DNA of 64,000 nt from Laetmonice hystrix (taxonomy: Eukaryota): assembly GCA_965235115.1 (NCBI GenBank), contig OZ249443.1, positions 20,150,001 through 20,214,000 of the forward strand, written 5' to 3'. Below the pieces are notes generated by a model. That model worked only from the letters and a program-made list of their open reading frames with translations, was not told the DNA's origin and searched no databases. Below are positions 5,809 through 63,243 of this stretch, one piece after another; within the stretch, counting starts at the first letter, position 1, and the number at the start of each line of letters is the position of its first letter. Position numbers and translations under genes: made by a program.

Positions 5809-6217
5809 GTCGATCAGGGATGAATGGTTGCTTTCCGCTGCTTCCTGTTGGCACTCATCCAGCAGCTGGTCAGGGATGGGATCCACCACCCCTTCCCTAC
5901 CACTGCGTCGATATCTGACAGAAACATGGAGATGGTGGGGGTAGGCAATGATAAAAACTACTTTGACATCAGATAGGCATAAAGAAATGTTATCTGAGAC
6001 AAGACAAAGGTTCAAAAAACGTTTTGGAACGTGTACGTTGTGCGAGTAAAACGTTTTAAGGTTTCCTGTCAGCTGGGATGTTTCATCACCCAGCTTAGAG
6101 CAGCGGGAATGACAATCCTGCCCACATGAAGGACCCCCCCCCCCCCACCCCCACCCCCACCAATGGGACGTCCAATGTCGATGACCGTCACAATAAACCT
6201 GTTTGTATATGTTCCAG

Positions 6218-7311
6218 GGACGTTCGAGTACTCGGAGGAGCTGTGTAAGCTCTGGGTGACCCTCGACCTCTTCTTCTGTAACAACATCTGTCTCCACCTG
6301 GCCTTCACCAACATGGACACATTCCTACGGCTTAAAGACCCACTCCGTCACGGCCGGATCGTCACCACCTGCTCTGTGGTGTTGTGGATCGGAGCCCCTT
6401 GGATGATATCACTGGTCCAGGCCATCGCTCAGTTCATGCTCAGCCAGGGTGACCACGGCATCATCCATTCCGGGGTCTGCTTCATCGCTGACAAGAACTT
6501 CGTGATCCTAGGCACCCTCTTCTCCTTCCTCATCCCCACTATTATATCCATTCTTTTCTACTGCCTCTGTGTGTGCGAGATCCGGGCCTTGAAGCATGGC
6601 AAGTTTCTTGAGGAGAGTGAAGGGAGTCAGAACGTGTACCGCTACGCTTCAAATGAGTCTCTACCGGAGGAGCTCTCCGACACAACTAGTTGTCTGTCCG
6701 ACACGCAATGCGACACGACCACGACTGCCCCCGAGCAGGTGCAGCTGGCAGTCGTGACAAACATGAAAGAAGGGGAGGTCAAGGAATGCGTGAGTAACTC
6801 CCCTCACAACTCCAGCCTGGAGGAGACGACGTCGTTCTGCGACGACCACGCGCTCTCTCCATGCGCCGGCGACCACGCTAACAATAACGCCGCCACCAAC
6901 TTTATGGAGCACATCCTGTCGACTGACCAGAGCGCCTCCTGTACTCTCCTCCTGCGGGAGTCTCACACGGAGGGCGTCCTCCCGGAGACATTGATCCGGC
7001 CCAATGCCGAGGTCGACCACAGTAGTCCAGACGAGAACCTTCGCCATGAACAGGCCATCAGCCGGCTCATGTTCTTACTCCTCATCTGCTGCATCGCTCT
7101 TTGGGTGCCCTTCTCTGCCAGCAACGTCGTCTACGGCGTCTGTAGGCATTGCCGGGCCAACATGGCCTTCGATGAAATGAGCACGTTCAAGTGGCTGGCT
7201 TACAGTACCGCGGTGCTTGGCCCATTCATTTATGTGAAGTTCTCTGAACCGATGAGGGACGCCTACTGTAAACTTTTCAGTTGTCTCTACTGTAGACGGT
7301 GCTGGCATTAG
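6218..7311 (+). CDS. Class A (rhodopsin-like) GPCR, aminergic/5-HT2-like; large terminal exon encoding ECL1 to TM7 and C-tail
   Basis: ORF 6163-7311 has C..W..LDLFFC (TM3 with D3.32), ECL2 Cys, TM5 FSFLIP, long ICL3, TM6 LWVPF, TM7 GPFIY and a Cys-rich tail. Acceptor gttccag at 6211-6217 precedes G-T-F-E-Y. TM1-TM2 exon(s) not found in the window. Confidence 0.85.
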
Positions 7312-10084: not shown

Positions 10085-10730
10085 ACAGTTTTTGTCCTGG
10101 TTTAGGATAAACTTATATTCTCTCGTTTCCTTACATAGTTGTTTTGTTCTGGTTTAGTATAGGCCTACATTCTCTCGTTTCCTTTACACCGTTGTTTTGT
10201 CCTGGTTTAGTATAGACCTACATGTATATTCTCTCGTTTCCTTTACACCGTTGTTTTGTCCTGGTCTAGTATAGACCTATATTCTCTTGTTTCCTTTACA
10301 CCGTTGTTTTGTCCTGGTTTAGTATAGACCTATATTCTCTTGTTTCCTTACACCGTTGTTTTGTGCTGGTTTAGTATAGACCTACATTCTCTCGTTTCCT
10401 TTACACCGTTGTTTTGTCCTGGTTTAGTATAGACCTATATTCTCTTGTTTCCTTTACACCGTTGTTTTGTCCTGGTTTAGTATAGACCTATATTCTCTTG
10501 TTTCCTTACACCGTTGTTTTGTCCTGGTTTAGTATAGACCTATATTCTCTTGTTTCCTTTACACCGTTGTTTTGTCCTGGTTTAGTATAGGCCTACATTC
10601 TCTCGTTTCCTTTACACCGTTGTTTTGTCCTGGTGTTGTATAGACCTTTTCTCTTGTTTCCTCACATAGTTGTTTTGTCCTGGTTTAGTATGCTAGTATA
10701 CACCTACATTCTCCTGTTTTTGTCCTGGTT
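10085..10730. repeat. Minisatellite, ~52-53-bp unit, ~11 copies
   Basis: Unit TTCTCTCGTTTCCTTTACACCGTTGTTTTGTCCTGGTTTAGTATAGACCTA(C/T)A repeated head-to-tail. Confidence 0.9.
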
Positions 10731-16700: not shown

Positions 16701-16976
16701 ACTGGTGTGATTACTCCAACCTGTAATGATGCGGTAACGGTCAAACAGTGGGCCGTAATCATGTAAGGTTCACAAGACCGAACCAATCTCATGAGGATCC
16801 AACCAATCTCAGGGTAACTGAACCAAATCCAATCCTAGGATAACCAATCTCAGAGAATCCAACCTATAACTGGGATTTAACTGGGTTTGCGCAAACACAC
16901 CTGAACTATCCCAGGTGGGTTGACATCCTTCCAAAGATCATTTTTCTCACGGGCCCTGCCCACTGTTTTACTGCGT

Positions 16977-18024
16977 TAACGTACGGTGGCAGTAAAGACA
17001 CGACTACGTTTTGTGGGGAGCAATAACTGTAGATTCTTTACTTTGCATCTGTACACAGTGCCAGTACAACCCGGAGGATAAGGCACACGAACACAACCAA
17101 AATATACAGTATTGGCTATAACTGATGTATGCTTGATGATGTGTGGTTCACGTCTGGTTTGCAGGACTTGACCACACGTACGTTCCTCAATGGTAGAGCA
17201 GAATGAATGAAGTCTTTGAGATACACTGCCCACTGTTACTGAATACTGAATGTTCACGCACTAACTCACCAGGCAGAGTTTTTGGGATGTGGTGAAGCTG
17301 AGTGATGTCTTTGGCGTCGGACAAGCGTAATGGCGTTGTCGAGCAGGTAGAGTTCCTTAGGATGTGTGAAGTTGTTTCCAGCAGGCAAAGATGTGTGTCT
17401 TACCAAATTGTAGGATGAGTATATATAGGGAGGACCAATGTCAAACTGACCAATGATATATAACATAAAAATGCTGGTCATCTATTGGCTACACCATCAC
17501 AGGGCAGGCCTGTTTGAGGATTGTCCATTTGTTGTTAAAGCCAAGTGAGTTGGCACTGGCAGACAGTCTAATGAGCAGTGATTACTGAGGCCGACATCCT
17601 GGCACTAGTGAGCTGCTTCACAGAGGTGGGAAACAATAGGTGAGAAAACACCTGTATTACGGGTTCCCTGTGATGAGCGACTCTGCCCCTATGACTGTAC
17701 TGCCTTCATTAATAAAACAACCTCCCAAACGAAAGCTGGGGAAAACCATCAATGGAGAACATATGTCACCCAAGAGATTACATTGTTTGTAAACCTAAGA
17801 TGCTGGTAGCAGACAATGAATACAAACTGAACATCTGAGAACGGTGGTTAAATCCTTAATGCACCACGACATGGTTGGTAAATGTCTATAATGAACATCT
17901 AATCTTTCTGGGTGTAAATCAAACGTATACAATTTACAACTAAACACAAGAATTGTCTCTGACATAAGTTGTCTGTTCATTATTTTGAGCAAGAGTGGCC
18001 CATAGTGAAACTAGGGGTACGATA
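16977..18024 (-). repeat. 3' LTR (1048 bp)
   Basis: Apparently identical to 25516-26563 (three identical ORF-track translations at constant offset); 8-bp imperfect terminal inverted repeat TAACGTAC...GTACGATA. Confidence 0.95.
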
Positions 18025-18026
18025 TA

Positions 18027-18038
18027 TCCCCCTCGCTC
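18027..18038 (-). other. Polypurine tract
   Basis: Minus strand GAGCGAGGGGGA, separated from the 3' LTR by 2 nt. Confidence 0.8.
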
Positions 18039-18376
18039 AACTGAGATTGGAGCATCCAATCTCTAAAGGACAAAAATATACCTACGCTATAGTTCTCGGA
18101 CTATGTCAGAATTACGACTGTACTTATACGTAACATGACTTCTTCTTCTTTTTTTTTATATACAAAACATATCATCAATGCAAGAGCTAAATACTAGTAT
18201 ACAGTCATACCCGGCATTTTGGTATGGCAAAAGTATAGGACACAATATACATAAGGGATCGTGTCGATTGGTAATGACACGCACTGAATATCCCAGGGAG
18301 ATGCTTGAACAGACAGATTGTAAAGCATCTCTTCTTGGCGGTGTTTTCCAGAACACACAGAATGCCTTTCAGTATA

Positions 18377-18665
18377 TATGGTGTTCGGCATGAAATGTTT
18401 ATGCAACACCCTTGTTGTTGACCACATGAAAGTTTATGTGTATCACCGTATTGGACACATGGAAAGTTTATGTGTTCGTTGTATTTTCACACGTTTTTCA
18501 TTTCATTTCTTGAAGGTTGTAGTATGGTGTTCGGCATGAAATGTTTATGCAACACCCTTGTTGTTGACCACATGAAAGTTTATGTGTATCACTGTATTGA
18601 ACACATGGAAAGTTTATGTGTTTGTTGTGTCTTAACACTTTTTCATTTCATTTCTTGAAGGTTGT
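18377..18665. repeat. ~146-bp tandem duplication in the element 3' UTR
   Basis: TATGGTGTTCGGCATGAAATG...CTTGAAGGTTGT at 18377 and 18523. Confidence 0.85.
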
Positions 18666-18885
18666 CAACTGTTGAAATGATGACGGTTGACACATTGTTG
18701 ACACATTATTTGCTTGTTTTTGCTTGCTTCTTGTTTCTCTTGTTGGTTGCTGTTACATTGTTGTCTGATGTCTTGGAGATCTTACGTGGCTTGACTGGAT
18801 TGGTAGGGTTGTTTGAGTTAACCAGGGGTGAGGCGAAACCATAGGTACCATGACAGTTAATTACCGTTTGTCGCAAACCTTCAGC

Positions 18886-19620
18886 TTAATCAGGGTGGGA
18901 CAGTACACCTGTTAACATGGGGACGCACTGTTTGCAGGGTTTGAGGCATACCTGGACGTAAAAGCTGAATTGGGCGTGGCGGACAAATAGTAGGGCTTGA
19001 AATTTTTGTTTTAGAATGGATTTTAGTTTTAGGGCTTGCCAGGGGGAAATGGACAATTGTTCTGGCAATGGGACATCTTGGTTAGACAAAGTGTTGGTGA
19101 TGGACAGATCCTGCCAGTTAATATATAGGACGGGGCGTATGGAACCTTTGACATGGACGTCTTTTAGCCATAGGGATGCTTGGAAGTGGAAGTTTCTAGG
19201 GCAAATGGGGACATCTACGATTGGGACTTTCACGCACTTAGGACCGGTGGACAATTCAATAAAAATGGTCGAGTGGTGTTTGTTGCGCTTGTAGGCTTTG
19301 TACAGCAGGAGACCAACTGTGACCATTATGGCGAAGGTCACCATGTACGATGCAATATCATGCGTACATATGTCTACGGGGGAAGGGGTGGGGATGGTGG
19401 GTTGGGCTGTCGATGGGAATAGGTGGATTACTTTGTCTACAGCAAGTGCATGGGCTGCTTTTGTTTGTTTGAGTATTGACACATAAGCAATTAGTGTGCG
19501 GTATTTCCAGAAGAGAACTACTGTTCCTAGTAAGGATATACCACTAACGATGATGGGGATGAGGGTCCACCACCATGTAGTAGATGACCAGAGGATTGAG
19601 CCCGGATCAGCCCCCAATGC
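18886..19620 (-). pseudogene. env: env C-terminal fragment (TM anchor, second TM, ~115-aa extra domain)
   Basis: ORF 18886-19662: WWWTLIPIIVSGISLLGTVVLFWKY, second hydrophobic helix IASYMVTFAIMVTVGLLLY, then a beta-rich-looking domain. Located just before PPT/3' LTR in element orientation. 5' boundary (inversion junction) is approximate. Confidence 0.7.
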
Positions 19621-19895
19621 CCCAAAATCTGCCACAGGATAGCCAAAACAACTCCCAAACAACTACTACAGACGGTCACCCCACAGATGACCTACCGGAC
19701 AATGCAGAGGTATCGGATATCATCAAGTCAGGAAAGGTGCAGAACAGAAAGGCATATAAAGTGAGACTGAAGGACAAAAGAGGTCCCATCTGGCTATATG
19801 CTGAGGATGTACCTGACGCCATGAAAAGAACATTTCACATACAAAGGACACAAGCAGGAAAGAAAAGAAAGAGAAAGAAAGTTACACGTCAGTAA
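19620..19895 (+). pseudogene. Inverted integrase C-terminus (chromodomain-like fold plus basic tail)
   Basis: EVSDIIKSGKVQNRKAYKVRLKDKRGPIWLYAEDVP..FHIQRTQAGKKRKRKK resembles chromodomain-like ends of gypsy integrases and is followed by an A-rich spacer and env, the expected pol-env order. Confidence 0.6.
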
Positions 19896-19911
19896 AACAA
19901 AAACAAGAACA

Positions 19912-19942
<31 letters not shown>

Positions 19943-19965
19943 TCGAAAACAGCAAACAAACAATC

Positions 19966-19996
<31 letters not shown>

Positions 19997-20355
19997 GGAG
20001 GAGAAAGTGGCTTCCAACAAACCCCCCACCCCCCAACCACCCCTAAAATTCATGTGCTTTATATGAAGTGCTTTAGTGCCAGTTGTTTCTACAAAACTTG
20101 TGCCAGACCGTTAACAGTGTCACCAACAGAGCATCACTCGACGAGTCGCTTCTTTTACTTACAACTTGAGTCATACGGTTAAGTTTTAGAGTACAGTATA
20201 CCTGTCAGAGATCACTGTAAAGAGGATATTGCTTCGGTTGCCGACGGCGTGCTAACCCCAAAATCTGTGTCCAGAAAGGGCAGTGGAGCTTCATGTGCAC
20301 ACACCCTCATATCATCCATTATTCGTGCCTCATTCATTAAGGCTCTGCTCCCTAT

Positions 20356-21534
20356 ATGTTCACAGATTGCTGGGAATTAGCTACTCCCCGGGGCGTGCGC
20401 GCAACAAGCAGTCGGAGCTCTGTACTCGGCACAGTGCGGACAGGACTGATCATAGTACTCATTTACACCGTCATGATCTCAACCAAGATTCAAGCTATGG
20501 ATGTGGTTCAGCGACCCAACTACGGAATATTATTCCAACCCGCTGGCCGTATGCAAGCCACCTACAACAAGTGGTCGCATACTTTCCAGTTAACCATGCC
20601 CCAACGTCTGCAAGTTAACAGTACCAGCGTATCATGTCCTGAAACCACGTCCCATCATCCATGTTCAGCTTTAGTAAAGGCTCTTCAACGTGCCCATGCG
20701 ATACGCATGCGGACAGCCTCAACACTAAACATTTTACGCGACCAGATTATAGCACTCGTACCAAAGAGCAGAGCAAAACTCTCTCTCTCACGGTCCAAGC
20801 GAGCGTTACTACCAATCATCGGTGAACTGGCCCATTCCTTATTCGGAACAGCAACAGAACAAGAAGTAGAAACACTGGCAAGACATATCATAGCACTAGA
20901 AAAGCACTCCGACAAACAAGCGGCCGCTTTTGCACGTCACTCTGAGGAAATGTCTTCCTTCATGGCTGCAACAACAGAGCACTTTGAAAGTCTCACGGCT
21001 GAAATTCTAGAGAATCATCAAGCCCTAAATGATGTCTCTTTTACCCTACGTAGCTTTGGCCTGGCCACACAAGCGGCAATACAATTATCAATTGCTTTGG
21101 CAGAGGATGCTCACTTAACAGGTCAACTACAGCAACAATTCTCACTCATGTTCCAAGGCGTCCATGAGCTGACTCAGCATCGTCTCTCGCCATCACTACT
21201 ACCACTACAAATTCTCGAACACACCCTGGACAATATCAAGAACTTGCTAGCAACCAGCCACCCAGAATTTAAAATCGCTATCAGAGCCAACCACATTTAT
21301 GATTCCAAGGATTTCTTTTGGGCTTTCAGAAACAACTCGATTTTCATTACAATCAATATTCCACTTCTAACTCAGGCTGTGGTGCTGAACGTATACAAGG
21401 TCATCTCAGTACCAGTACCACTGCACACAAATTCTGAGCAAGTGACTCAACTTCTGGACACACCACGATACATAGCCTTCAGCTCAGATGGACTATATTA
21501 TACCATCCCAGACCCAGACAAATGGTTATCATAA
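20356..21534 (+). pseudogene. env: Inverted env N-terminal fragment, baculovirus-F/errantivirus-type class I fusogen (392 aa, truncated)
   Basis: Signal peptide LIIVLIYTVMISTKIQA, furin site RSKR (20791-20802), fusion-peptide-like ALLPIIGELAHSLFGTATEQE, heptad-rich helices. Ends at the junction with pol; no TM. Confidence 0.85.
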
Positions 21535-21540
21535 TTATCG

Positions 21541-24061
21541 TAGGGAGGGTTCCTTTGCTTAGGTATGTGTAAATGTGCCTGAAGTCTGGACACTCCTGTT
21601 GTGCGGCTGAAATAGTTGACCTGTCCATGCCAACAGGTGTCACTGCCGTTATTTCAGCGTTTGGTTGGGTAACTGTTCCTTGGTATTCAAATGATGCCTG
21701 CCACTGTTCATATAGGTTAGGCTGTTGTGGAATGGGTGTGCAAGTGAGAACTTCTCCATCAAGGTGTTCCATTATGGCACTCTTGGGATGTGGTGTGCTT
21801 TGGCTGTCATTGTATGGTCGACGTGAGAGGCCATCTGCATTAGTGTTAGCCACTCCTTTCTTGTGCTCGATGGTGAATGTATAGCCTTGTAGATTTAGTG
21901 CCCATCTGCATAACCTTGGGTTTTTGTGTTTAAAGTTCATTACATGTTTTAGTGCTTGGTGATCGGTCACGAGTTTAAAGGGTCGATGTGAGAGGTATAC
22001 GTGGAAGGCTTCTATGGCTTCTACGGCTGCCAAGCACTCCAGTTCAGATATTCCACGTTTGTATTCTGCACCGCGTAGGGATCGTCCTCCATAGCATACC
22101 GGATGTTCCTTTCCTGTACTATCTATCTGACTTAAGACATAGCCAATGGCACTACTGGACGCGTCAGATGTTACTATGAAGTCTTGGTTGAGGTCCGGAT
22201 AAGCTAAGACGGGGGGGTTTGTGAGACTTTCCTTGAGTTTGCTGAATGCCAGGGAACATTCTTCTGTCCAGACGAATTCAATATCTTTTTTAAGCAAAGC
22301 TGTTAATGGTGCCGTAGTTGTACTGTATCCGTCAATGAAGCGCCTGTAGTAATTAGCAATTCCCAGAAATGATCTCACTTGTTTTGGTGTTTTGGGGACT
22401 GGAAAGTCCGTTACTGCTTTGATCTTCTCAGGGTTGGGCAGGATTCCATTAGATGACAGGATATGACCCAGATAAGTGACTGCATTTGTACCAAAGCGAC
22501 ATTTTGTGGGTTTGGCTTTAAGGTTTGCCTTCCTTAACCTATCGAAGACTTGCTCCAAATCTTTCATGTGTTGGTCCACATCTGAGCTGAACACAATGAT
22601 GTCGTCGACAAATCCTGCCATAATTTTGTATACGAGTCCCCTGAAGACTTCAGAGACGAGTTTTTGGAAAGAGGTGCTAGCATTTCGCAAACCAAATGGC
22701 ATACGGTTCCAGGCATACTCTCCCTGTTGTGTCACGAATGCGGTTTTGTCTTTGCTGTCGGGATGGACTGGTATTTGCCAAAAAGCACCGGCCAGGTCTA
22801 TGACTGTATAGATTTTGGCTTTTCTTTGACCAATCGCATCCCATATGTCTTCCAAGCGGGGCATGGGGAAGCTCATTGGTTTGGTTACTGCATTGACATG
22901 TCTGTAGTCGACCGCAAAACGATAGGATCCATCACGTTTTTTCACTAACACGACGGGCGATGTCCACTCTGAAGTTGAGGGTTCAATGAAGCCACAAGCA
23001 AGCAATTCCTCAACTTGTTTATCTATTTCTTCTCTTACCTTAGGCGAGGCCCTGTAGAATCGCTTTGCTTTGGGAGGTGCATCACCTGTGTCTATTGTGT
23101 GGGTCATGAGTTGTGTGCATCCTATGTCAGAGACGTCTGTTGCAAAAACATCAGAGTGTTTAAGTAGGAATTGTCTGAGTCTATTCTTGTCATAGTCAGA
23201 CAACTCAGGATTTTCAACGTCAGGATCAAATGCAGCATTGCCTTGTGTGTTACGTTGTGGCTGATGTTGAACGTCTGTTTCATCACTTTCTTCGGCTATA
23301 GTCATGACCTGAGCTGGGGACATGCGACGTGCAATTCCAATGGTTGACATACCTGGTATGCGGACGGATTTACTTGTATTATTAATGATACGACATATTA
23401 TCGGTTTGTTGTCTTCCACTTCAACTAATGTTGGAATTACAGAGAATTGTGACCCTTTAAGTGTGCTCTTTCCTGTTGGTTCAATCAAGAACGGGTCCGT
23501 ACATGTTGTTGATAATTTGACCCGTACTGCTGTTACTGAACGTGCTGGTATCTTTTCAGGTTTTGTGGTTCTGACCAAAGTCGCCTTATTTGAGAGTGGG
23601 CCTAGAGGTAATGATATGCCTCTGTCCAGTGTTAATGTCCCATTCTCAAGGTTAACAATGGCTTTGTGTGCGGTCATGAAATCCATGCCTATTATTAGGG
23701 CGTGGTGACCTTGGAGCACGTGGAAGGGGTGACTAAATTCTGTGGTTCCTGCCTTGAATTTCAGGAGTATGCAGTCTAGCACCTTGTGTGTTTCTCCTCC
23801 CACACCTCTGACCGAGTTGTATGTGGGTCTCACTTTTGTGTGATTTCTCATAGATATTTTGTTGATCAGATGTGCAGAAATACATGAAATTACTGCACCT
23901 GTGTCTATGAGGGCTTGAACTGATAGTTGGCCTATCTGTACAGGTAGTGCCTGGTCATACTCTAGGTTGGTAGTAGACATTAGGTCAGCTGTTGGACCTT
24001 CTGTTTCAAGACTTTGCCTGTCCTCACATGTCATTTGACATGAAGAAACAGGCGCGAATTC
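21541..24061 (-). CDS. pol: pol: aspartic protease, reverse transcriptase, RNase H; integrase truncated
   Basis: ORF 21479-24034: LIDTGA (PR); YRFAVDYR, MPFGL, FVDD (RT); TSDAS, ELECLA, TDHQAL, NADGLSR (RH). Breaks after QQECPDFRHIYTYLSKGTLP with no HHCC or DDE motifs. Frame stays open up to the gag TAG. Confidence 0.92.
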
Positions 24062-25360
24062 CTATGCGGAATATTGGTGGTTGGGTGGGATTTGGGCTCG
24101 GTTTTTGTAGGACTTCTGGTGGTGGGGTCGGGGATGGTAATTCTGCTGAGGGTGGGATTGGAAATTCTGCTGAGGGTGGGGTTGGAAATTCTGCTGAGGG
24201 TGGGGTTGGAAATTCTGCTGAGGGTGGGGTTGGAAATTCTGCTGAGGGTGGGGTTGGTAATTATATTGTGGTTTGCCACGACACATAAAGTACCAATGGT
24301 TTTCCTTTCCACAAGATTGACAATTGTGACCCCTGGCTAAACAATCCTTACCTCGTCTGCACTCGATTTGTCCACAATTGGCGCATATGTCTGTCTGTTG
24401 ATGCTGTTGAGTATAGTTGTGTTGGTTGCGTCTGGGTTGTCTCTGTTGGCTTGGACCTTGGTGACGTGGTTGGCCCTGGTAGCTGTCTTCAGGTTGTGAC
24501 CATCGTCCCGTGGTGGGTGACGTCATCTGGGCTGTTGATGGGACGGCTGAGTTGACTTGAGCTGCCCTAGTCAAAGATGCCACCTCAGTTCTCAGCTGAT
24601 CAATTGATGTGAGGACTTCTTGGTTGAGCGTTGTGGTGGCTGAAGCAACTGGGATGGCTACTTGCAGTGCCGCGCAATCAATTACTTGTTTCGGCGTTCT
24701 GGGATTCGCTTGCCGAAAAAATGGCAAGAATTCCGGCCTGAGTCCAGATTCTATGATCTGGACAATGTTAGTATCATCCAGATCCAAACCTTTTGCAGCC
24801 AGCACTACTTCATTTACATAATCTGGCACTGATTGCCCTAATTTTTGTTGGCTGGTAGCCAGTTGTCTAAACTTTAGTCCTCTGTTGGGGCGTTTTGGAC
24901 CATTTATCCAATATGCTTCAAATGCTGCTGACAGACGTGTGAAGCTCTCCTGGTCGGCCTTCGGCAACGTCCGGTACCAGGTTTCCCCGTCACCGGTAAA
25001 CATAAAACGTACCGCTGCTGCTGCTTGTCTGTCATTTTTGTTATTCCATGTTGTCATGGCTGTGACGTCATCCAGCCAGTCTTGGGGGTTGATGACTCCA
25101 TCAAAGCTTTTAGGCATCATCGCCATCATCATGGTGTCGTCCCACTCAGTGTCGGCTTCTTCCTGTGCTATTTCGTCCTCTTCCTCGTGGACGACTGGTG
25201 CCGGGTCGGGCACAGGGTGGGGCGGTACTATTGTTCTTTTAGTACCCTCTATTTGGGGTATGCCGTTGGTTGCAGCCTGAGAGCGTGTTGCTGCTGCTGG
25301 TCCTAGTGGTAATTTGGCTGACACTGCCCTTTGTATGGGATTATTGCATGGGGCTGACAT
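24062..25360 (-). CDS. gag: gag (432 aa) with CCHC zinc knuckle
   Basis: FDG...QDWL..V..MT.W / A.TWY retrotransposon-gag motifs; CANCGQIEC...CQSCGKENHWYFMC knuckle; five PHPQQNFQ-type repeats encoded by a 24-bp tandem at ~24131-24258. Confidence 0.9.
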   Translation of the reverse strand: MSAPCNNPIQRAVSAKLPLGPAAATRSQAATNGIPQIEGTKRTIVPPHPVPDPAPVVHEEEDEIAQEEADTEWDDTMMMAMMPKSFDGVINPQDWLDDVTAMTTWNNKNDRQAAAAVRFMFTGDGETWYRTLPKADQESFTRLSAAFEAYWINGPKRPNRGLKFRQLATSQQKLGQSVPDYVNEVVLAAKGLDLDDTNIVQIIESGLRPEFLPFFRQANPRTPKQVIDCAALQVAIPVASATTTLNQEVLTSIDQLRTEVASLTRAAQVNSAVPSTAQMTSPTTGRWSQPEDSYQGQPRHQGPSQQRQPRRNQHNYTQQHQQTDICANCGQIECRRGKDCLARGHNCQSCGKENHWYFMCRGKPQYNYQPHPQQNFQPHPQQNFQPHPQQNFQPHPQQNFQSHPQQNYHPRPHHQKSYKNRAQIPPNHQYSA

Positions 25361-25498
25361 GCCACATTAAAATAACTGAATTTTGATGATTTCGGCACTC
25401 ACACTAACGGTGCACCAACAACTGTCCACAGATACAAAACTGCTCACCGAGAATCAGTTGCCACTGCTTTCCCAACCAGAGTTAGGCAAAACGAGACA

Positions 25499-25513
25499 CC
25501 GGATTCTCCACCA
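25499..25513 (-). other. Primer-binding site, tRNA-Ala
   Basis: Minus strand TGGTGGAGAATCCGG, 2 nt from the 5' LTR. It is complementary to a tRNA 3' end ...ATTCTCC-A-CCA with U70, the G3:U70 alanine identity element. Confidence 0.8.
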
Positions 25514-25515
25514 AT

Positions 25516-26563
25516 TAACGTACGGTGGCAGTAAAGACACGACTACGTTTTGTGGGGAGCAATAACTGTAGATTCTTTACTTTGCATCTGTACACAGTGC
25601 CAGTACAACCCGGAGGATAAGGCACACGAACACAACCAAAATATACAGTATTGGCTATAACTGATGTATGCTTGATGATGTGTGGTTCACGTCTGGTTTG
25701 CAGGACTTGACCACACGTACGTTCCTCAATGGTAGAGCAGAATGAATGAAGTCTTTGAGATACACTGCCCACTGTTACTGAATACTGAATGTTCACGCAC
25801 TAACTCACCAGGCAGAGTTTTTGGGATGTGGTGAAGCTGAGTGATGTCTTTGGCGTCGGACAAGCGTAATGGCGTTGTCGAGCAGGTAGAGTTCCTTAGG
25901 ATGTGTGAAGTTGTTTCCAGCAGGCAAAGATGTGTGTCTTACCAAATTGTAGGATGAGTATATATAGGGAGGACCAATGTCAAACTGACCAATGATATAT
26001 AACATAAAAATGCTGGTCATCTATTGGCTACACCATCACAGGGCAGGCCTGTTTGAGGATTGTCCATTTGTTGTTAAAGCCAAGTGAGTTGGCACTGGCA
26101 GACAGTCTAATGAGCAGTGATTACTGAGGCCGACATCCTGGCACTAGTGAGCTGCTTCACAGAGGTGGGAAACAATAGGTGAGAAAACACCTGTATTACG
26201 GGTTCCCTGTGATGAGCGACTCTGCCCCTATGACTGTACTGCCTTCATTAATAAAACAACCTCCCAAACGAAAGCTGGGGAAAACCATCAATGGAGAACA
26301 TATGTCACCCAAGAGATTACATTGTTTGTAAACCTAAGATGCTGGTAGCAGACAATGAATACAAACTGAACATCTGAGAACGGTGGTTAAATCCTTAATG
26401 CACCACGACATGGTTGGTAAATGTCTATAATGAACATCTAATCTTTCTGGGTGTAAATCAAACGTATACAATTTACAACTAAACACAAGAATTGTCTCTG
26501 ACATAAGTTGTCTGTTCATTATTTTGAGCAAGAGTGGCCCATAGTGAAACTAGGGGTACGATA
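25516..26563 (-). repeat. 5' LTR (1048 bp)
   Basis: Direct repeat of 16977-18024, followed by the GCGT TSD. Confidence 0.95.
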
Positions 26564-28618
26564 GCGTTATCAAAGGCCCTGTCTGTACTTTTTCTTTCAA
26601 TAAGGATAAAGGATTGTTCAAAGTGATAAGTTTCTTTCTCTCATCCTCACTAATACCTTCTTGGACTCGGTTCCCCCTGGAAAGATTACGTTATTACATT
26701 GTATTCTCGCCTGGCTGGCTGAAATACTGCTGACAATGACATGACATAAACCTCCTAATTCTCTCCGCTAGCGGGTGAACTCCCCCCCCTCCCCCTCCCT
26801 TCCACCCCCCCCCCCCCACCCCACCACCCACCCCTACTGACAGAGCCAGCAGACAGACTAGCTAACAACATCATTACCTGGACAACTCCCAGTCCACAAT
26901 TAGCTTCGTTTGATGCCAGACTCCAGGCAGAGGATTTGATCTTTGCCACCAGTCTGTGAACACTTGTAAATTATACGCCGCCGTGTGCGCCGACTGGGGT
27001 AAAGGGAGCGACTAGGGCGTGAACAAGCTGCCCAAGTAGGAAGGGTTCTTACCCCTATTCCTGACGGATATCAGTGACAGGTTCTACCAAATCTGAAGAA
27101 CATAAGTAGGTAACAGACAACACTGTCCGTCACAAATGTTCCATGTCGCCTTCAATTGGGACTCAAGGACACCGGAACATGGGCTACCATGTTCTTTAAC
27201 CCTCCCAGAGAACATCACGGCTTGTCACACAGCAAGGTCCTTCGGATGGCACTTGAGGAAAATGATTCTTTGACCTTTCAAAAAAAGTTCCTGTTGCACT
27301 CAGGCTTCGCTTGGCTCTGCTGAGATCAACAAATGGATCTGGCACGGCCGGGCACATTAAATTAACAGATAGAAAAAAAATAATACTTTTAACAAGAGGA
27401 TAGGAACATTCTGTCTTCCGTACGATTTTTCCCGAAGTAATTGCCACGGAACATTTGCAGGCTTTGGTGTATTACATGTTGTAAAAACATTACACTGGTG
27501 CTACAAAATCCGAAATATGACACTGACACTTGTGTACATCCTGATCGACCCTGACATTTTGTCACCACGCAATCCAAGTAAGCCAGGACAGGTTGCCGTC
27601 GCAGAGACGGACTGGATCAGTAGCAAGCAAACATTCCACTACTTGGAAAAATATCTACAGGCAAAAATCTAAAACCTTCAAAAACATTTCTACTTTCTGC
27701 TTATTTTTTTATTTGGGGTGGGGGTGGAGACTGATGTGTTTGTAACTTTCCTGCTCAACAACCCTGGTGTACCACCATCCAGCACATCAAATAATAACAG
27801 TGATGTTGGAAGCATTTTTTTATTTTTTATTTATTATTATTATTATTTATTTGGGGGGGGGGGGCAACTAGGCCATGTTCCAAGAGCATTTTAGATTGGG
27901 GGGGGGGGTGGGGGCAGACTATGTTTTGCCCCAGTTTCTTTGCCTTTGGTGGTGGGGCCATGGCCCATGGACCCCCCCCCCCCCCCCCTTTCCGACATCA
28001 CTGAATAATTGAACAATTGTTACGCTCTTTGGTGCAGCCCCCCAGCCTTAAGAACATGACGTCATCACTAATGATGAGACGGGTCCTTCTTTAAGCACTA
28101 CTCCCTGATCCAAACATGTTGCACCTAACAAACAATGTATCCTAACTCAGTGGAATCTTACCAGACACTGCTGCCCTCTCGTGGCAACATTTGATGTAGC
28201 AAATCGATAAGATTCCCCTGGTGGTAAATCATCGAACCACTACTACAGAGACTATTGTGAAGCACTCTCAAAATAACAGCTTGGGATTTCGAAACAAAAC
28301 ACAATAATATCTCTCATAGCTGCTAAAATGAACAACGGCTATAACAACGGCTAATATAAAAATAAAGTTACATTCAGGAATAGCATCTACTGTGCTGCCC
28401 CCTGTCGGTGGCTGTGGTGACGTGTTGTCCAAAGGTTGAGGAAGTAATTAAAATAACATTAATTCCCGAGAGGTAACCTTGGTTGACTGGGCCTCATATA
28501 GACAATATCACAGTCCCTCAGGGCGGCACAGTATTAGGATTTCTGAGGGTTGAACAAGTCTGACAGGATCACAGAGTAATGCCCCGAGCAGTGCAATACC
28601 AAAAAGACTTGTGCCTAC

Positions 28619-35285: not shown

Positions 35286-35415
35286 NNNNNNNNNNNNNNN
35301 NNNNNNNNNNNNNNNNNNNNNNNNNNNNNNNNNNNNNNNNNNNNNNNNNNNNNNNNNNNNNNNNNNNNNNNNNNNNNNNNNNNNNNNNNNNNNNNNNNNN
35401 NNNNNNNNNNNNNNN
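35286..35415. other. Assembly gap (N)
   Basis: Run of N. Confidence 1.
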
Positions 35416-40632: not shown

Positions 40633-43131
40633 CTATCTTGAATTAACAGGCGGAAGTGTTGGTGTCTCACTTCCGGTTCCGCTTTCTGTCTGTCCTGCGC
40701 TCGCCCTAATTACAGTCTCATCCTCCAGCTTGTATTTCCCTGCAACCTCCCTGATGGAGGCATCGCGACTAATCTCCACACTGGAGAGGCCATCGTCATC
40801 GGACGCACAACCCGGCAAGGCGATCTGCTTGAAAAGTCCGACACGTTGTTGCGCAGTCATGACGGTAGAGGGCGCGCGTGCTGACGCCCGACGTGGCAGC
40901 ACTGTCGGGGACGCGAGGAGGTTGTATTGGTGAACGGTTGGAGGACAGACACGTTTACTCCGGGCTGAGTGAATGCGTCTTCTCCTCCTGTGATACCGGA
41001 GGAAGTCGTAGGAAAGGAACGCCACCACGAATACATAGAACGCTGCCACGGCGACGCCAACAGTGATGTTTACCGAAACGTGCACTGGAGGAAAGGAGCG
41101 AGAAAGGTTTTGTGGGATGTGGCTCCTATTGGTATCCAGGAGACAAAGGGGGGGGGATTTAATTGCATTCTATTATTAATGTTAATCTGAAAAGGGGAGA
41201 AACAGCAGCAACAACAACAAGGTGTTCTGACAAAGAGAGAAATACTAGGCCTACTTATCATTAAATCTAGCTGAAAAGTTCAGTGTACAAAACACAATTT
41301 TTGAAAGATAGCACGTGTGGCCTATAGTCAAAATAGTGCATAGAAGACGAAAAAGAAGTTAAGAAGAAACGGAAGAAGATGAAAATGAAGAAGAAGAAGA
41401 AGAAGAAGAAGAAGAAGAAGAATGAGAAGATGAGAGAAGAAGATGAGAGAAGAAGAAGAAGAAGAAGAAGAAGAAGATGAGAGAAGAAGATGAGAGAAGA
41501 AGAAGGAGAAAATGAAGAAGAAGAAGAAGAAGAAGAAGAAGAATGAGAAGATGAGAGAAGAAGAAGATGAGAGAAGAAGAANNNNNNNNNNNNNNNNNNN
41601 NNNNNNNNNNNNNNNNNNNNNNNNNNNNNNNNNNNNNNNNNNNNNNNNNNNNNNNNNNNNNNNNNNNNNNNNNNNNNNNNNNNNNNNNNNNNNNNNNNNN
41701 NNNNNNNNNNNNNNNNNNNNNNNNNNNNNNNNNNNNNNNNNNNNNGAACAAGAAGAAGAGCAGGAATCAAAAAACAAACAAAAACGAAAATGAAGAAGAA
41801 GGCCTGCAGATACCGTGACATCGAGCGAGTTGGCCTGACCACGTTCCATCCTGTTGACAGGCACGGATTAAGTTACCCTCCCTGTGCCTGTAGAGATTCT
41901 TACACGTAAACTCGGCAGTGTCGTTATACTGGTAGACGGGTTTCAACATTCCATTCAGATAGACAGAGGAAGCATCGAATCGTGGCGGTGGGCACGTGGT
42001 TCCTGAAATACACACCCGTCAGACCTCTGAGGATTCATTATGTACTGGTCTCATTAAAGGGAATAGAAAAGTTCAAACTATCAATATATAAGGGTGTTCA
42101 GCATGAACAAGCTTGTTCTTACCTAGAATTCTGTGATTATCTGATCTTTAATAAAGGAATAATCAACCGAAATGTAGAGACATTCTCCCGCTGGCTTCGT
42201 CCGTTTGTTTACCCTATTTGGCCCTTATCTCAATCTATTAATAGATATAGCTCCCGCTGTCTCGCGTGGGTATTTTTAAAAAGTCGCCGTTGACAGTGTT
42301 CCACTTATCGGTGTGACCTTAGACGTTAGTGAGGAATTTTTCTATTCTCTTTAATAACTGAAAAAAGTATTCTTGCTATCTCTGGCATTCTAGATGCATG
42401 TAAGCTGCTTCATTGTTCAACCGACAGAGTGGTGATTGTAAAAGTACTTGTTTGATTTTGATTATATAGGATTTACGAAAAGAAAAACACCAGGGCATAT
42501 CAGTCAGTTTGAATTACAAAAGAAACGGGAATACTCGGGGGAAACTGCGAGTACCTCAGGCTCAAAATGCGATCACAGGCAATAGCTATTACAAATGAGA
42601 ATCAAACTGTTCCCAGGAATACTTACGGACACAAGCTGGCGGTGACGTAGACCAGCGGGTTGCGTCACACGTGACCGTCCAAATGACGTCATCAGTGGGA
42701 AATCTGTGTCCAACCTCACAAACATACGTCACCGACGTCACGCAGTTGGCAATGCTCACAGAAAACTCATGCGTGGAGTGTTTCACAGTCGGCACCGCCC
42801 CACAGGTTTTATCTGATGTCAAATGTTAAATTCAACATTGGATCACAGATCTACAACGGAACAGTTACCATTACATTCTTTTCTTCTTATACAAACTTTT
42901 TTTTCGATGGAGGCGGGGGAAGGGGGTCTAAAAATCATTTATTTTTCGGCATCATATTAAGTTGGAAGGTACTGTCTAAAGAGCCCAACATGCGTAGGTT
43001 GAGTATTGTCAACATACGGTATTCGCAGGTGGTGCCTGTGAAGCAGATAGCCGTGCAGTTACAAGTCGTACCGCCAGGGGTCGACGGTACAAACCTGTTG
43101 TAACACCGCTGTTCACTCACCGCCAATACTG
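40633..43131 (-). CDS. Type I membrane protein: EGF-like, 2 x sushi/CCP, TM, cytoplasmic tail (3' four exons)
   Basis: Phase-1 exons 43131-43018 (CYNRF...GTTCNCTAICFTGTTCEY), 42812-42627 (CCP: C..P...Y.C..G......C....W...P.C), 42002-41814 (CCP: CPPP...AEFTC...RACQQDGTWSG..ARC) and 41084-40633 (TM VGVAVAAFYVFVVAFLSY, RRRRR stop-transfer, stop). Start exon not identified. Confidence 0.8.
41340..41800. repeat. (GAA)n / GAAGATGAGA microsatellite containing an N gap (41582-41745)
   Basis: Directly visible. Confidence 0.95.
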
Positions 43132-43651: not shown

Positions 43652-44331
43652 NNNNNNNNNNNNNNNNNNNNNNNNNNNNNNNNNNNNNNNNNNNNNNNNN
43701 NNNNNNNNNNNNNNNNNNNNNNNNNNNNNNNNNNNNNNNNNNNNNNNNNNNNNNNNNNNNNNNNNNNNNNNNNNNNNNNNNNNNNNNNNNNNNNNNNNNN
43801 NNNNNNNNNNNNNNNNNNNNNNNNNNNNNNNNNNNNNNNNNNNNNNNNNNNNNNNNNNNNNNNNNNNNNNNNNNNNNNNNNNNNNNNNNNNNNNNNNNNN
43901 NNNNNNNNNNNNNNNNNNNNNNNNNNNNNNNNNNNNNNNNNNNNNNNNNNNNNNNNNNNNNNNNNNNNNNNNNNNNNNNNNNNNNNNNNNNNNNNNNNNN
44001 NNNNNNNNNNNNNNNNNNNNNNNNNNNNNNNNNNNNNNNNNNNNNNNNNNNNNNNNNNNNNNNNNNNNNNNNNNNNNNNNNNNNNNNNNNNNNNNNNNNN
44101 NNNNNNNNNNNNNNNNNNNNNNNNNNNNNNNNNNNNNNNNNNNNNAGAGAGGNNNNNNNNNNNNNNNNNNNNNNNNNNNNNNNNNNNNNNNNNNNNNNNN
44201 NNNNNNNNNNNNNNNNNNNNNNNNNNNNNNNNNNNNNNNNNNNNNNNNNNNNNNNNNNNNNNNNNNNNNNNNNNNNNNNNNNNNNNNNNNNNNNNNNNNN
44301 NNNNNNNNNNNNNNNNNNNNNNNNNNNNNNN
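43652..44331. other. Assembly gap (N) with a 7-bp island at 44146-44152
   Basis: Run of N. Confidence 1.
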
Positions 44332-59734: not shown

Positions 59735-61647
59735 TCACACCTCAAAGGAGTGCTCCCCCGAGGGGGGCTTGTACAAGTCATGCAGCAAGAGCGTGCTCTT
59801 GGTCTGCAGCGAGAGGTTGAGGGCCTCGATTTTGGTGAGGAGGTCGTTTCCTAGCAGTTTCCTCACCAGGAGCCGAGCCAGGTCCTTTAACCTGGGCGGG
59901 GCTGAGGTAACACACTCTAAGAGTTTTATCATCAGCTTTTGCTTCTCCTCGGGGATGTTTTCCACCAGTTTTTTATCGTCTTGCCAGTTGAGGACCGGGG
60001 CGAGCTGACAGCGAAGGTTGATGAGAAGTTCGGCAATGTCCCAGCTACCAGAGTGAAGAGCGTAGAGGACGGGGGCCTGAACTTCTGTGTGGATCTCATC
60101 CTCAGAGGACTCCTTACACACCAGCCCCGCCATGTTGATGTCACAGTTGGCTTCCAGTAAGTGCCGCACGATTTTCATGGAACCAAGGCAGATGGCGATG
60201 AGCAGCGGCGTGCTAGCCGGCACTATGTCGCTGTTATGAGTTAGTTTAGTCGACTGGACATCGGGAACCGCCTTGGACGCCAAAAGGGTTTGCACAACGG
60301 GCGGTGCGCTCGCCCAAACGGCAACATGCAGGGCGGTCCAACCCTCCGGGGTGCTCTGGTTCACATCGCTGCCGCGTTCTATTAAGTACTGCACAATGTC
60401 TAGATACCCCCCTGAGCAAGCCACCATTAGCGGGGTGGCTCCTAGCTTGGCGCGGACTCCAATCCCACAACCTTTCTCTGTGAGCGTCTGGCAAAGGTTG
60501 AGGGACCCAACGCAGGCGGCCCAGTGAAGGGCTGTCAGTCCCTCGTTGTCCTTGGCCATGATGTCAGCGCCCTTGGTGAGTAGCAGTTGTGCCACCGCCT
60601 CGTCATACTCACAGGCGGCCAGGAAGGGCGTCCGACCCTGCGCGTCCTTGCCCTCCAGCTCGGCCCCCAGCTCATCCAGCAGGAGCTTCACGTTGTCCCT
60701 CCTCCCGTGTTTGATGGCCTTGTGGAGCGCAAGGTTGAGCTTCTCCTGCTTGTCTTCCTCCGTGTACTTGGAGAGCGTCGGGTGTTTCTCCAAGATGAGT
60801 GCTAGAATCTGGGGGCGGCCCTCTTGGGCCAAATACATGAACGGGCTGTCTTCGTATCCATGACTGCCGTACTGGCCGACGAAAGGGTCGACCTGCAGTT
60901 CGTCCAGGAGGACGCTAACCTCCTCGCGGTCGGCCGTATTCCAGTCTTCGTTTTCCGCCTGGATGTCGAGACTGTAGCAGAACTTGATAAACTCCACGTC
61001 CTTGGTGGCCAACGCCAGGCTCATCTTGACGATCTCTGTCGTACAGCCAGCGTCACGTAGCGTCTGCATGATCTCCTGCGGAGAGCACATAAACAGGTGA
61101 CGTCACAAGTACAACTTTACTCCGCTTCAGAGACCACAGAAAGAGGCACAGAAAGTATTTCCAAACAACCAAATTCAAAATGCAACCACTGTCTTAATGG
61201 TAGCTTTGATGTTTATGGTCGCACACTTCTAAGGTCTAGAAAAGATGGCAAACATGAAAAAAAGTATCGATATTTTGAAAAGTAAACCCTGTAGAACTGC
61301 ATAGCTGTATTTAACATAAATTCGGACAGATTAGGAAGGAATGCCCATCTATTTTTTTTAAATAATTTTGGGCTCCTCTCAGAAAATGTAACTATTGGGA
61401 CTGCTCGATGGATACACTTTATATGCCTCTTTATTGGACTGGCAGGCTAAAACCTCTTCTTTATATCAAATCAGTTGTGAGAGGTGTGGGACACCTTGCG
61501 GCTATCTTTCTCCAGATAAGGTTACAATAACAGACCTCTAGGCGGGGTCCGGGAACTTACCGTGTGGCGGCCTCGGAATGCGTGAACGAACGGAGTGTCA
61601 CCGTTCTCATCCTCAGTGTCGATGTCAGCACCGGCCGACAGCAGCAC
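59735..61647 (-). CDS. Ankyrin-repeat and SOCS-box protein (ASB-like), last two exons
   Basis: Exon 61647-61561 (VLLSAGADIDTEDENGDTPFVHAFRGRHT, 87 bp) splices in phase 0 to 61075-59735. Multiple G.TPL/TALH ankyrin repeats and C-terminal SOCS box PPRLKDLARLLVRKLLG...KIEALNLSLQTKSTLL. Upstream exons lie beyond the window. Confidence 0.88.
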
Positions 61648-61666: not shown

Positions 61667-63243
61667 CGGTCAGGTCTGCTCCTCCTAAAGTCTGTGTCCC
61701 CGGCAGGTCTGCTCCTCCCAAACAAAGTCAGTGGCCCCGACGGGTCTGCTCCCAAACAAAGTCAGTGACCCCGGCGGGTCTACTCCCAAACAAAGTCAGT
61801 GTCCCCGGCAGGTCTGCTCCTCCCAAAACAAAGTCAGTGACCCCGGCGGGTCTGCTCCCAAACAAAGTCAGTGACCCCGGCGGGTCTGCTCCTCCCAAAC
61901 AAAGTCAGTGACCCCGGCGGGTCTGCTCCTCCCAAATAAAGTCAGTGACCCCGGCAGGTCTACTCCCAAACAATGTCAGTGACCCCGGCAGGTCTACTCC
62001 CAAACAATGTCAGTGACCCCGGCGGGTCTGCTCCTCCCAAATAAAGTCAGTGACCCCGGCAGGTCTACTCCCAAACAAAGTCAGTGACCCCGGCAGGTCT
62101 ACTCCCAAACAATGTCAGTGACCCCGGCAGGTCTACTCCCAAACAATGTCAGTGACCCCGGCGGGTCTGCTCCTCCCAAACAAAGTCAGTGTACCCGGCG
62201 GGTCTGCTCCTCCCAAACAAAGTCAGTGACCCCGGGAGGTCTACTCCCAAACAAAGTCAGTGACCCCGGCAGGTCTACTCCCAAACAAAGTCAGTGACTC
62301 CGGCGGGTCTACTCCCAAACAAAGTCAGTGACCCGGGCAGGTCTACTCCCAAACAAAGTCAGTGACCCGGGCAGGTCTACTCCCAAACAAAGTCAGTGAC
62401 CCCGGCGGGTCTGCTCCTCCCAAAGTCTGTGACCCCGGCAGGTCTACTCCCAAACAAAGTCAGTGACCCGGGCAGGTCTACTCCCAAACAAAGTCAGTGA
62501 CCCGGGCAGGTCTACTCCCAAACAAAGTCAGTGACCCCGGCAGGTCTACTCCCAAACAAAGTCAGTGACCCGGGCAGGTCTACTCCCAAACAAAGTCAGT
62601 GACCCGGGCAGGTCTACTCCCAAACAAAGTCAGTGACCCCGGCAGGTCTACTCCCAAACAAAGTCAGCGACCCCGGCGGGTCTACTCCCAAACAAAGTCA
62701 GTGTCCCCGGCGGGTCTACTCCCAAACAAAGTCAGTGACCCGGGCAGGTCTACTCCCAAACAAAGTCAGTGACCCGGGCAGGTCTACTCCCAAACAAAGT
62801 CAGTGACCCGGGCAGGTCTACTCCCAAACAAAGTCAGTGACCCCGGCAGGTCTACTCCCAAACAAAGTCAGCGACCCCGGCGGGTCTACTCCCAAACAAA
62901 GTCAGTGTCCCCGGCGGGTCTACTCCCAAACAAAGTCAGTGACCCGGGCAGGTCTACTCCCAAACAAAGTCAGTGACCCGGGCAGGTCTACTGCCAAACA
63001 AAGTCAGTGACCCCGGCAGGTCTACTGCCAAACAAAGTCAGTAAGCCCGGCGGGTCTCCTCCTCCCAAACAAAGTCAGTGACACCGGCGGGTCTGCTCCT
63101 CCCAAACAAAGTCAGTGACACCGGCGGGTCTACTCCTCCCAAACAAAGTCAGTGACCCCGGCGGGTCTACTCCTCCCAAACAAAGTCAGTGACCCCGGCG
63201 GGTCTGCTCCTCCCAAACAAAGTCAGTAAGCCCGGCGGGTCTC
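61667..63243. repeat. Intronic minisatellite, 34-37-bp unit, ~45 copies
   Basis: GTGACCCCGGCAGGTCTACTCCCAAACAAAGTCA head-to-tail, with variants and higher-order blocks. Confidence 0.95.

Follow-up and report, generated by a model that had tools for sequence, protein, structure and literature searches.

The question raised by this locus is whether a retroelement that carries the motifs of a viral envelope gene (env) can be taken for a working, envelope-bearing one. The locus lies in a stretch of 64,000 nucleotides from Laetmonice hystrix (contig OZ249443.1, positions 20,150,001 to 20,214,000 of the forward strand), which we call the window and to which all coordinates below refer. The element occupies 16977..26563, with its sense on the minus strand, and is an element of the Ty3/gypsy kind with long terminal repeats (LTRs) and an env related to the F (fusion) proteins. 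A preliminary description, made from the sequence alone, presented it as a very young errantivirus-like element with open gag and pol frames and an F-type env, and hence as evidence for an infectious-type family recently active in this host. We believe that the element is young and its env F-type, and that this copy is nonetheless defective.

Our preferred reading, to which we would assign a probability of roughly 0.6, is that the locus holds one very recent insertion of an F-env Ty3/gypsy LTR element of the non-insect “ancient errantivirus” kind, and that this insertion was replication-defective, i.e., dead on arrival. The more general statement that we are dealing with a defective rearranged copy of an F-env Ty3/gypsy element we consider very probable. 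That the defect arose specifically at reverse transcription is a point on which we see the balance as even.

The ends of the element and the age of the insertion

An exact direct repeat of 1049 bp with no mismatches was found at 16976-18024 and 25515-26563. Since the sequence on both flanks is GCGT, the bounds of the LTRs were set at 25516..26563 (5' LTR) and 16977..18024 (3' LTR), both on the minus strand; the two are identical and 1048 bp long each. The target-site duplication GCGT then occupies 16973..16976 on the left and 26564..26567 on the right, a 4-bp match for which the chance is 1 in 256. A putative primer-binding-site stretch, initiated by TGG, stands 2 nt past the 5' LTR (25496..25513, minus strand), and a polypurine tract abuts the 3' LTR (18025..18038, minus strand). 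The bounds and the sense of the whole element are based on the LTR pair, the target duplication, the positions of these two signals and the orientation of gag and pol. Of the features typical of Ty3/gypsy, the following were found: direct LTRs with a short duplication, the TGG stretch with the purine tract, and a gag with a zinc knuckle (see below).

With no difference in 1048 positions, the 95% upper bound of the LTR divergence is about 0.3%. If neutral rates between 1e-9 and 1e-8 per site per year are assumed, from which the host's own rate may differ, the insertion would be younger than roughly 1.4 to 0.14 million years. The identity of the LTRs together with the target duplication therefore indicates a very recent integration. 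At this level the preliminary description was accurate: the LTRs without differences, the intact target duplication, a putative primer site and the purine tract are all present.

Some minor features of the ends can be added. Instead of the common TG..CA, the LTRs have TA..TA at their termini, where the terminal inverted repeat is imperfect and 8 bp long. TATA-like motifs occur at LTR positions 563 and 598, near the middle of the LTR, and no AATAAA was found in it. The 3' untranslated part contains a 146-bp tandem duplication, 95% identical (18377..18665, minus strand). The preliminary description took the primer site for one of tRNA-Ala, which we regard as a suggestion. The scan of the 64,000-nt window for tRNA genes found none, and the Rfam scan of the window gave no match.

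The reading frames and their scrambling

The interior of the element is different from its ends. Its gag gene (24062..25360, minus strand) is an intact open frame of 432 aa with a CCHC zinc knuckle in the translation; it contains no deletions, no inversions and no stops or frameshifts, and no gag family of Pfam was matched by it. The frames of gag and pol are the same, with a single UAG between them that is followed by G (24034-24064), and the sequence suggests that gag-pol is expressed by stop-codon read-through, not by frameshifting.

Two observations concern this region. The protein models of the closest pol relatives begin within a few codons of the gag-pol UAG. Inside the 3' end of gag there is a tandem repeat with a 24-bp unit in 5.7 copies (94% matches, 24125-24262), which codes for an 8-residue proline/glutamine-rich unit after the CCHC knuckle.

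The pol gene is broken; taken as one part it spans 19584..24034, with protease, reverse transcriptase and RNase H on the minus strand and the last ~85 codons on the plus strand. The minus-strand frame is open over 851 aa and contains, in this order, the aspartic protease domain (pol residues 30-128, 23651..23947), the reverse transcriptase (RVT_1, residues 364-526, 22457..22945) and RNase H (RT_RNaseH/RT_RNaseH_2, residues 589-718, 21881..22270), all detected by Pfam. Thus the open gag and the open protease-reverse transcriptase-RNase H frame of the preliminary description are both confirmed, the former with its zinc knuckle and the latter with all three domains.

What follows RNase H is not as expected. 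The closest pol proteins are 62-66% identical, and in the closest relatives an integrase follows RNase H; one of them, 1360 aa long and 62% identical, has protease, reverse transcriptase, RNase H, the integrase zinc-binding domain and the integrase core. In a tblastn comparison with this protein, the minus strand matched its residues 3-842, and a plus-strand stretch upstream of env its residues 1277-1349; the span between 842 and 1277 was unmatched on both strands. No integrase signal was found on either strand, by Pfam or by tblastn with the full-length relative. Compared to this relative, the zinc-binding domain and the catalytic core are lost (~430 codons). The homology of 120 pol relatives ends 10-20 residues short of the end of the 851-aa frame, and because it stops there, the tail of the frame is to be considered a read-through. 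In total, pol has one deletion and one inversion, and its retained pieces contain no stops and no frameshifts.

The env gene is broken as well; taken as one part it spans 18886..21534, with the N-terminal ~390 codons on the plus strand and the C-terminal ~250 codons on the minus strand. The first piece is a 392-aa plus-strand frame, antisense to gag-pol and converging tail to tail with pol. It matches the Pfam family Baculo_F (PF12259) at profile positions 7-353 of 609 (20455..21501, plus strand; E 3.3e-11, with 42.9 bits where the cut-off is 24.1). It includes a hydrophobic signal-peptide-like segment (env residues 23-48, 20422..20499) and a furin-type site RSKR with a fusion-peptide motif (residues 146-164, 20791..20847), in which the pattern RxKR-x6-G-x5-LFG is present. 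In the aligned relatives R149, the final arginine of the furin-type site, is conserved in 58/60, F163 in 58/60 and G164 in all 60.

The second piece is a 258-aa minus-strand frame beside the 3' untranslated region, and it matches the C-terminal ~245 residues of the relatives with 66% identity. It contains two hydrophobic membrane-anchor-like segments (residues 33-51 and 103-121 of the piece; 19300..19566, minus strand). The two pieces match opposite ends of one protein in six relatives of 736-859 aa, and ~200 mid-ectodomain residues of the same six are matched by neither. To the two closest env relatives the N-terminal and C-terminal pieces are 70%/66% and 74%/66% identical; because these values are similar for the same relatives, we assign both pieces to one lineage. 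Hence env has one inversion and one deletion (~200 codons), and again no stops or frameshifts in the retained pieces. The ectodomain is not continuous with a membrane anchor, since the anchor-like segments belong to a separate frame of the opposite strand.

The F-type identity of env is supported, at the level of sequence and model, by three independent lines: the Pfam match, the family profile and the predicted fold. The Baculo_F family, a hidden Markov model comparison with which had been proposed as a check in the preliminary description, is matched above its cut-off by the N-terminal part only, and it is also matched by 24 of the 60 aligned relatives. Env belongs to a large family, for which 1046 cluster representatives were obtained at E <= 1e-3; their full lengths are typically 780-870 aa. 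A profile of the 60 natural relatives found the PDB entries 9w4d/9w4e/9w4c, named “fusion protein”, with E 2.8e-15; the single env sequence gave no match to solved structures, and only the family profile did. The AlphaFold model of the N-terminal piece has a mean pLDDT (the confidence score of the model) of 77.8, and its best Foldseek matches in the PDB are hPIV3 F, RSV F, Langya virus F and NDV F. The Foldseek probability is 1.0 in the top seven rows and stays at 0.96-1.0 as far as Langya F, and the lowest E is 8e-6; the TM-scores are only ~0.26, which is what a monomeric fragment containing a long helix can be expected to give, and the sequence identity to the solved F proteins is 10-16%.

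As to the relatives themselves, the full-length proteins P0159, P0163, P0165 and P0173 (~740-870 aa) exceed the 609-position Baculo_F profile in length. In the env relatives the long C-terminal part contains a pair of hydrophobic segments as well as a cysteine-rich tail, which is conserved and belongs to no Pfam family.

The preliminary description can also be read literally, as a colinear gag-pol-env with a usable env in which only minor parts are lost. The signal-peptide-like segment, the furin site and the fusion peptide are indeed present and conserved, which speaks for this reading. However, the env frame is on the strand opposite to gag-pol and ends after ~390 residues, compared to the ~780-870 aa of its relatives; the anchor belongs to a separate minus-strand frame, and ~200 residues are missing. 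We see virtually no chance for this reading, and a colinear env is refuted by strand and coverage. Of the earlier claim regarding env, the motif of furin site and fusion peptide stands at the residues given above; the env that should bear it is split, inverted in part and shortened. Judged from its frames, the copy cannot encode an integrase or a membrane-anchored fusion protein as it stands.

The inversion counted in pol and the one counted in env concern the same inverted segment. The order on the sense strand is 5' LTR and primer site, gag, pol with protease, reverse transcriptase and RNase H, the inverted segment, the C-terminal part of env, the 3' untranslated region, the purine tract and the 3' LTR. 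In the same direction the inverted segment consists of the N-terminal part of env, an A-rich spacer and the C-terminal tail of pol; that is, it comprises the last ~85 pol codons, the spacer and the first ~390 env codons, with an A-rich simple repeat at 19894..19988 (plus strand) in the spacer. Each of its ends is adjoined by a deletion: the whole integrase is missing at one end and ~200 mid-env codons at the other. Nothing was found by Pfam in frames of at least 40 aa between the 3' LTR and env, and the pieces there were identified by comparison with the proteins of the relatives.

Three other origins of this arrangement were considered and rejected. A simple inversion predicts an antisense integrase beside the inverted env; since integrase is absent on both strands, we replaced it by an inversion with two deletions. 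If the segment were a nested fragment of a second element, it could be expected to have its own LTR or target duplication, and it has neither; besides, the two env pieces match the same relatives equally. As for recombination between inverted repeats, no such repeats were found flanking the segment, and inverted matches between the neighbourhoods of the two junctions reach 6 nt at most, less than the mean of shuffled sequences.

One may ask whether the arrangement exists in the genome at all, or whether reads of several copies were mis-assembled, chimeric reads were used, or one collapsed LTR was placed twice. The F-env family is typically multicopy (PMC13524379), a collapsed repeat would give the same perfect identity over 1048 bp, and the irregular N runs elsewhere in the window demonstrate that the assembly is not gap-free. 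Inside the element and beside it, however, there is no N run, and the inverted segment is not bordered by inverted repeats, which could have led an assembler astray; these two facts together argue against a flipped scaffold piece as well as against inverted-repeat recombination. Moreover, the flanks carry the matching 4-bp duplication (1 in 256, as above), both env pieces are equally identical to the same relatives, and an artefact requires two independent wrong joins, each of which also loses sequence. We consider such an artefact unlikely, though it is to be kept in mind.

How the copy may have arisen

The state of the retained frames bears on the time of the rearrangement. In the tblastn comparisons every retained piece aligns as one stretch and in one frame without an internal stop. 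About 2100 codons are still open across five pieces, including the antisense and the orphan fragments, and because they are open the rearrangement must be young. Together with the absence of any LTR difference, this makes the scrambling, as far as the frames tell, about as young as the insertion itself.

We presume the following sequence of events. A template-switching error in reverse transcription would have produced the deletion-inversion-deletion in this copy or in its immediate parent. A complete copy elsewhere in the genome would have supplied the integrase and the particle proteins, so that the defective copy could be packaged and then integrated. Integrase supplied in trans would account for the clean 4-bp duplication in spite of the missing integrase gene; conversely, a target duplication of the integrase type around a copy without integrase indicates integration in trans. 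Errors of this type are well documented in defective retroviral proviruses: in one data set inversions were found in 6% and large internal deletions in 68% of the sequences, and both were attributed to reverse transcription (PMC6235535). The defective HIV-1 proviruses of that work are similar to our copy in their intact ends and in a scrambled interior with inversion and deletion; in contrast to them, ours is a germline copy of an invertebrate, and we infer rather than observe when its defect arose.

Deletion-inversion-deletion is also a recognised class of chromosomal structural variants. A complete colinear provirus could have been integrated first and scrambled later by such an event in the chromosome; the open retained pieces fit this course as they fit any very recent event. 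On the other hand, a complex event inside one 9.6-kb element, before any difference between its LTRs had appeared, is a priori much less probable than a replication error, and the search for repeats capable of mediating it gave none. Replication errors, for their part, are frequent per cycle of reverse transcription (PMC6235535). In our opinion a rearrangement after integration is an improbable explanation.

A scrambled form might also predate this insertion, being an established non-autonomous lineage that was copied often, in trans, by a complete helper. Everything required in cis has been kept (the LTRs, the primer site, the purine tract and the leader beside gag), and the copy was integrated without an integrase of its own. 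Against this, the ~2100 codons of five pieces, among them antisense and orphan fragments on which selection could not act, contain no stop or frameshift. In addition, the novel C-terminal read-through tail of pol was found in 0 of 120 pol relatives, and the truncated end of env in no protein of two large collections. We rate the existence of such a lineage as rather doubtful.

We return to the preferred reading, i.e., a single very recent insertion that was defective from the start. Several points weigh against it. Its timing of the defect (before, during or after integration) rests on the argument of rates and not on data from the locus. An assembly error may be involved, and the LTR identity may result from collapse or polishing. 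No other copy of the element was found in the 64,000-nt window, and the protein collections used do not include the proteins of this genome, so the complete source copy is a presumed one. Finally, the probable placement of the host is given by distant relatives only.

If the reading is correct, the zero LTR divergence, the clean duplication and the deletion-inversion-deletion interior with all fragments open make this copy a snapshot of an element that died at birth, and this is where we see the modest value of the observation. A complete relative with an integrase must then also have been active in the genome very recently. That a complete source copy should exist elsewhere was already expected in the preliminary description, and the expectation is reinforced logically, since this copy lacks integrase and is still flanked by a duplication of the integrase type. 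The view of an infectious-type, recently active family is retained as far as the very recent integration is concerned; this particular copy, with its split and inverted env and without integrase, does not represent it. For annotation the locus provides a warning: the motif content, without a check of strand and colinearity, is insufficient to call an element env-bearing and potentially infectious.

A further idea can be mentioned as very improbable. If the plus-strand env frame were transcribed, antisense to the element, from the neighbouring LTR or the spacer, it could give a secreted F fragment that interferes with the entry of complete relatives. The signal-peptide-like segment, the furin site and the fusion peptide are kept and no anchor is present, which makes a secreted fragment conceivable. 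If this were true, we would see a restriction factor derived from env early in its origin, at zero LTR divergence.

Known elements, the host and the surroundings

A systematic search of invertebrate genomes (Chary and Hayashi, eLife 2026; PMC13524379) has described intact gag-pol-env Ty3/gypsy elements with an env of the F or the gB type in most phyla, including Annelida and Mollusca. Many of the published F-env elements have copies that are >98% identical, and their furin site and fusion peptide are conserved (PMC13524379). The surprise about the host range that was implied in the preliminary description is therefore withdrawn: F-env Ty3/gypsy elements of non-insect phyla have already been reported, often as near-identical multicopy families, and the gain in this respect is small. 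Its assignment of the locus to errantivirus-like LTR elements with an F-type env is supported by the Ty3/gypsy features and the Baculo_F match.

The “insect” and the “ancient” errantiviruses are told apart by the region after RNase H, where the “ancient” group has a mini domain instead of a duplicated pseudo-RNase H (PMC13524379). In the structure model of our pol frame one canonical RNase H fold is followed by a linker of low confidence and two helices. The model contains no second RNase H-like barrel after RNase H; as the deletion has shortened this region, a mini domain may or may not have followed. Our copy agrees with the “ancient errantiviruses” of the cited work in its LTRs (>99% identical, which indicates recent activity), in gag, in a pol with protease, reverse transcriptase and RNase H, in the F-type env, whose furin site is combined with a hydrophobic fusion peptide, and in the lophotrochozoan host; the single canonical RNase H of the model, without a duplicated pseudo-RNase H, may be a further likeness, as far as the shortened region can tell. 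It differs from them in being neither colinear nor intact: integrase is absent, and env is split, inverted in part and shortened. In the broad sense an “errantivirus” has a third intact frame, env, colinear with gag-pol, and no such frame is present here. Accordingly, this copy is a defective derivative of a known kind and not an intact member of it.

With the insect errantiviruses (Drosophila gypsy, ZAM, Idefix) our element shares the retrovirus-like plan and the Baculo_F-related env. Unlike there, the host is no insect, the model of the shortened region shows no pseudo-RNase H duplication, and the env relatives are ~800 aa long with a long tail that carries two hydrophobic segments. The likeness to baculovirus F and to the class I F proteins of paramyxoviruses and pneumoviruses consists in the Baculo_F score, the profile match, the predicted fold and a furin site directly before the fusion peptide; the difference is that only the N-terminal part is found in one frame here.

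The surroundings of the element are DNA without long frames, and its neighbours are a single-exon gene of a G protein-coupled receptor (GPCR) and an ankyrin/SOCS-box gene. The named relatives of the GPCR are only from the annelid Capitella teleta (43-45% identity), with other relatives reaching 88%; the named relatives of env and pol are molluscan (Patella vulgata, Mytilus edulis and Sinanodonta woodiana). By these relatives the host is a lophotrochozoan and probably an annelid, which agrees with the earlier impression of a non-insect invertebrate genome.

The GPCR, of the rhodopsin family, is encoded by one exon at 6163-7311 (plus strand; 382 aa, 7tm_1 E 6e-21). The ankyrin-repeat protein is also encoded by a single exon, at 59735-61090 (minus strand; 451 aa), and has a weak C-terminal match to the SOCS box; an identical sequence was not found in the gene collection. 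Four N runs of irregular length (35286-35415, 41582-41745, 43652-44145 and 44153-44331) occur in an AT-rich stretch, one of them abutting an AGA microsatellite (41342-41581); the long “ORFs” (open reading frames) that span these runs are artefacts of the Ns. The window also contains two minisatellites, each with ~90% matching: one of a 34-bp unit in 45 copies (61687-63242) and one of a 53-bp unit in 11 copies (10090-10691).

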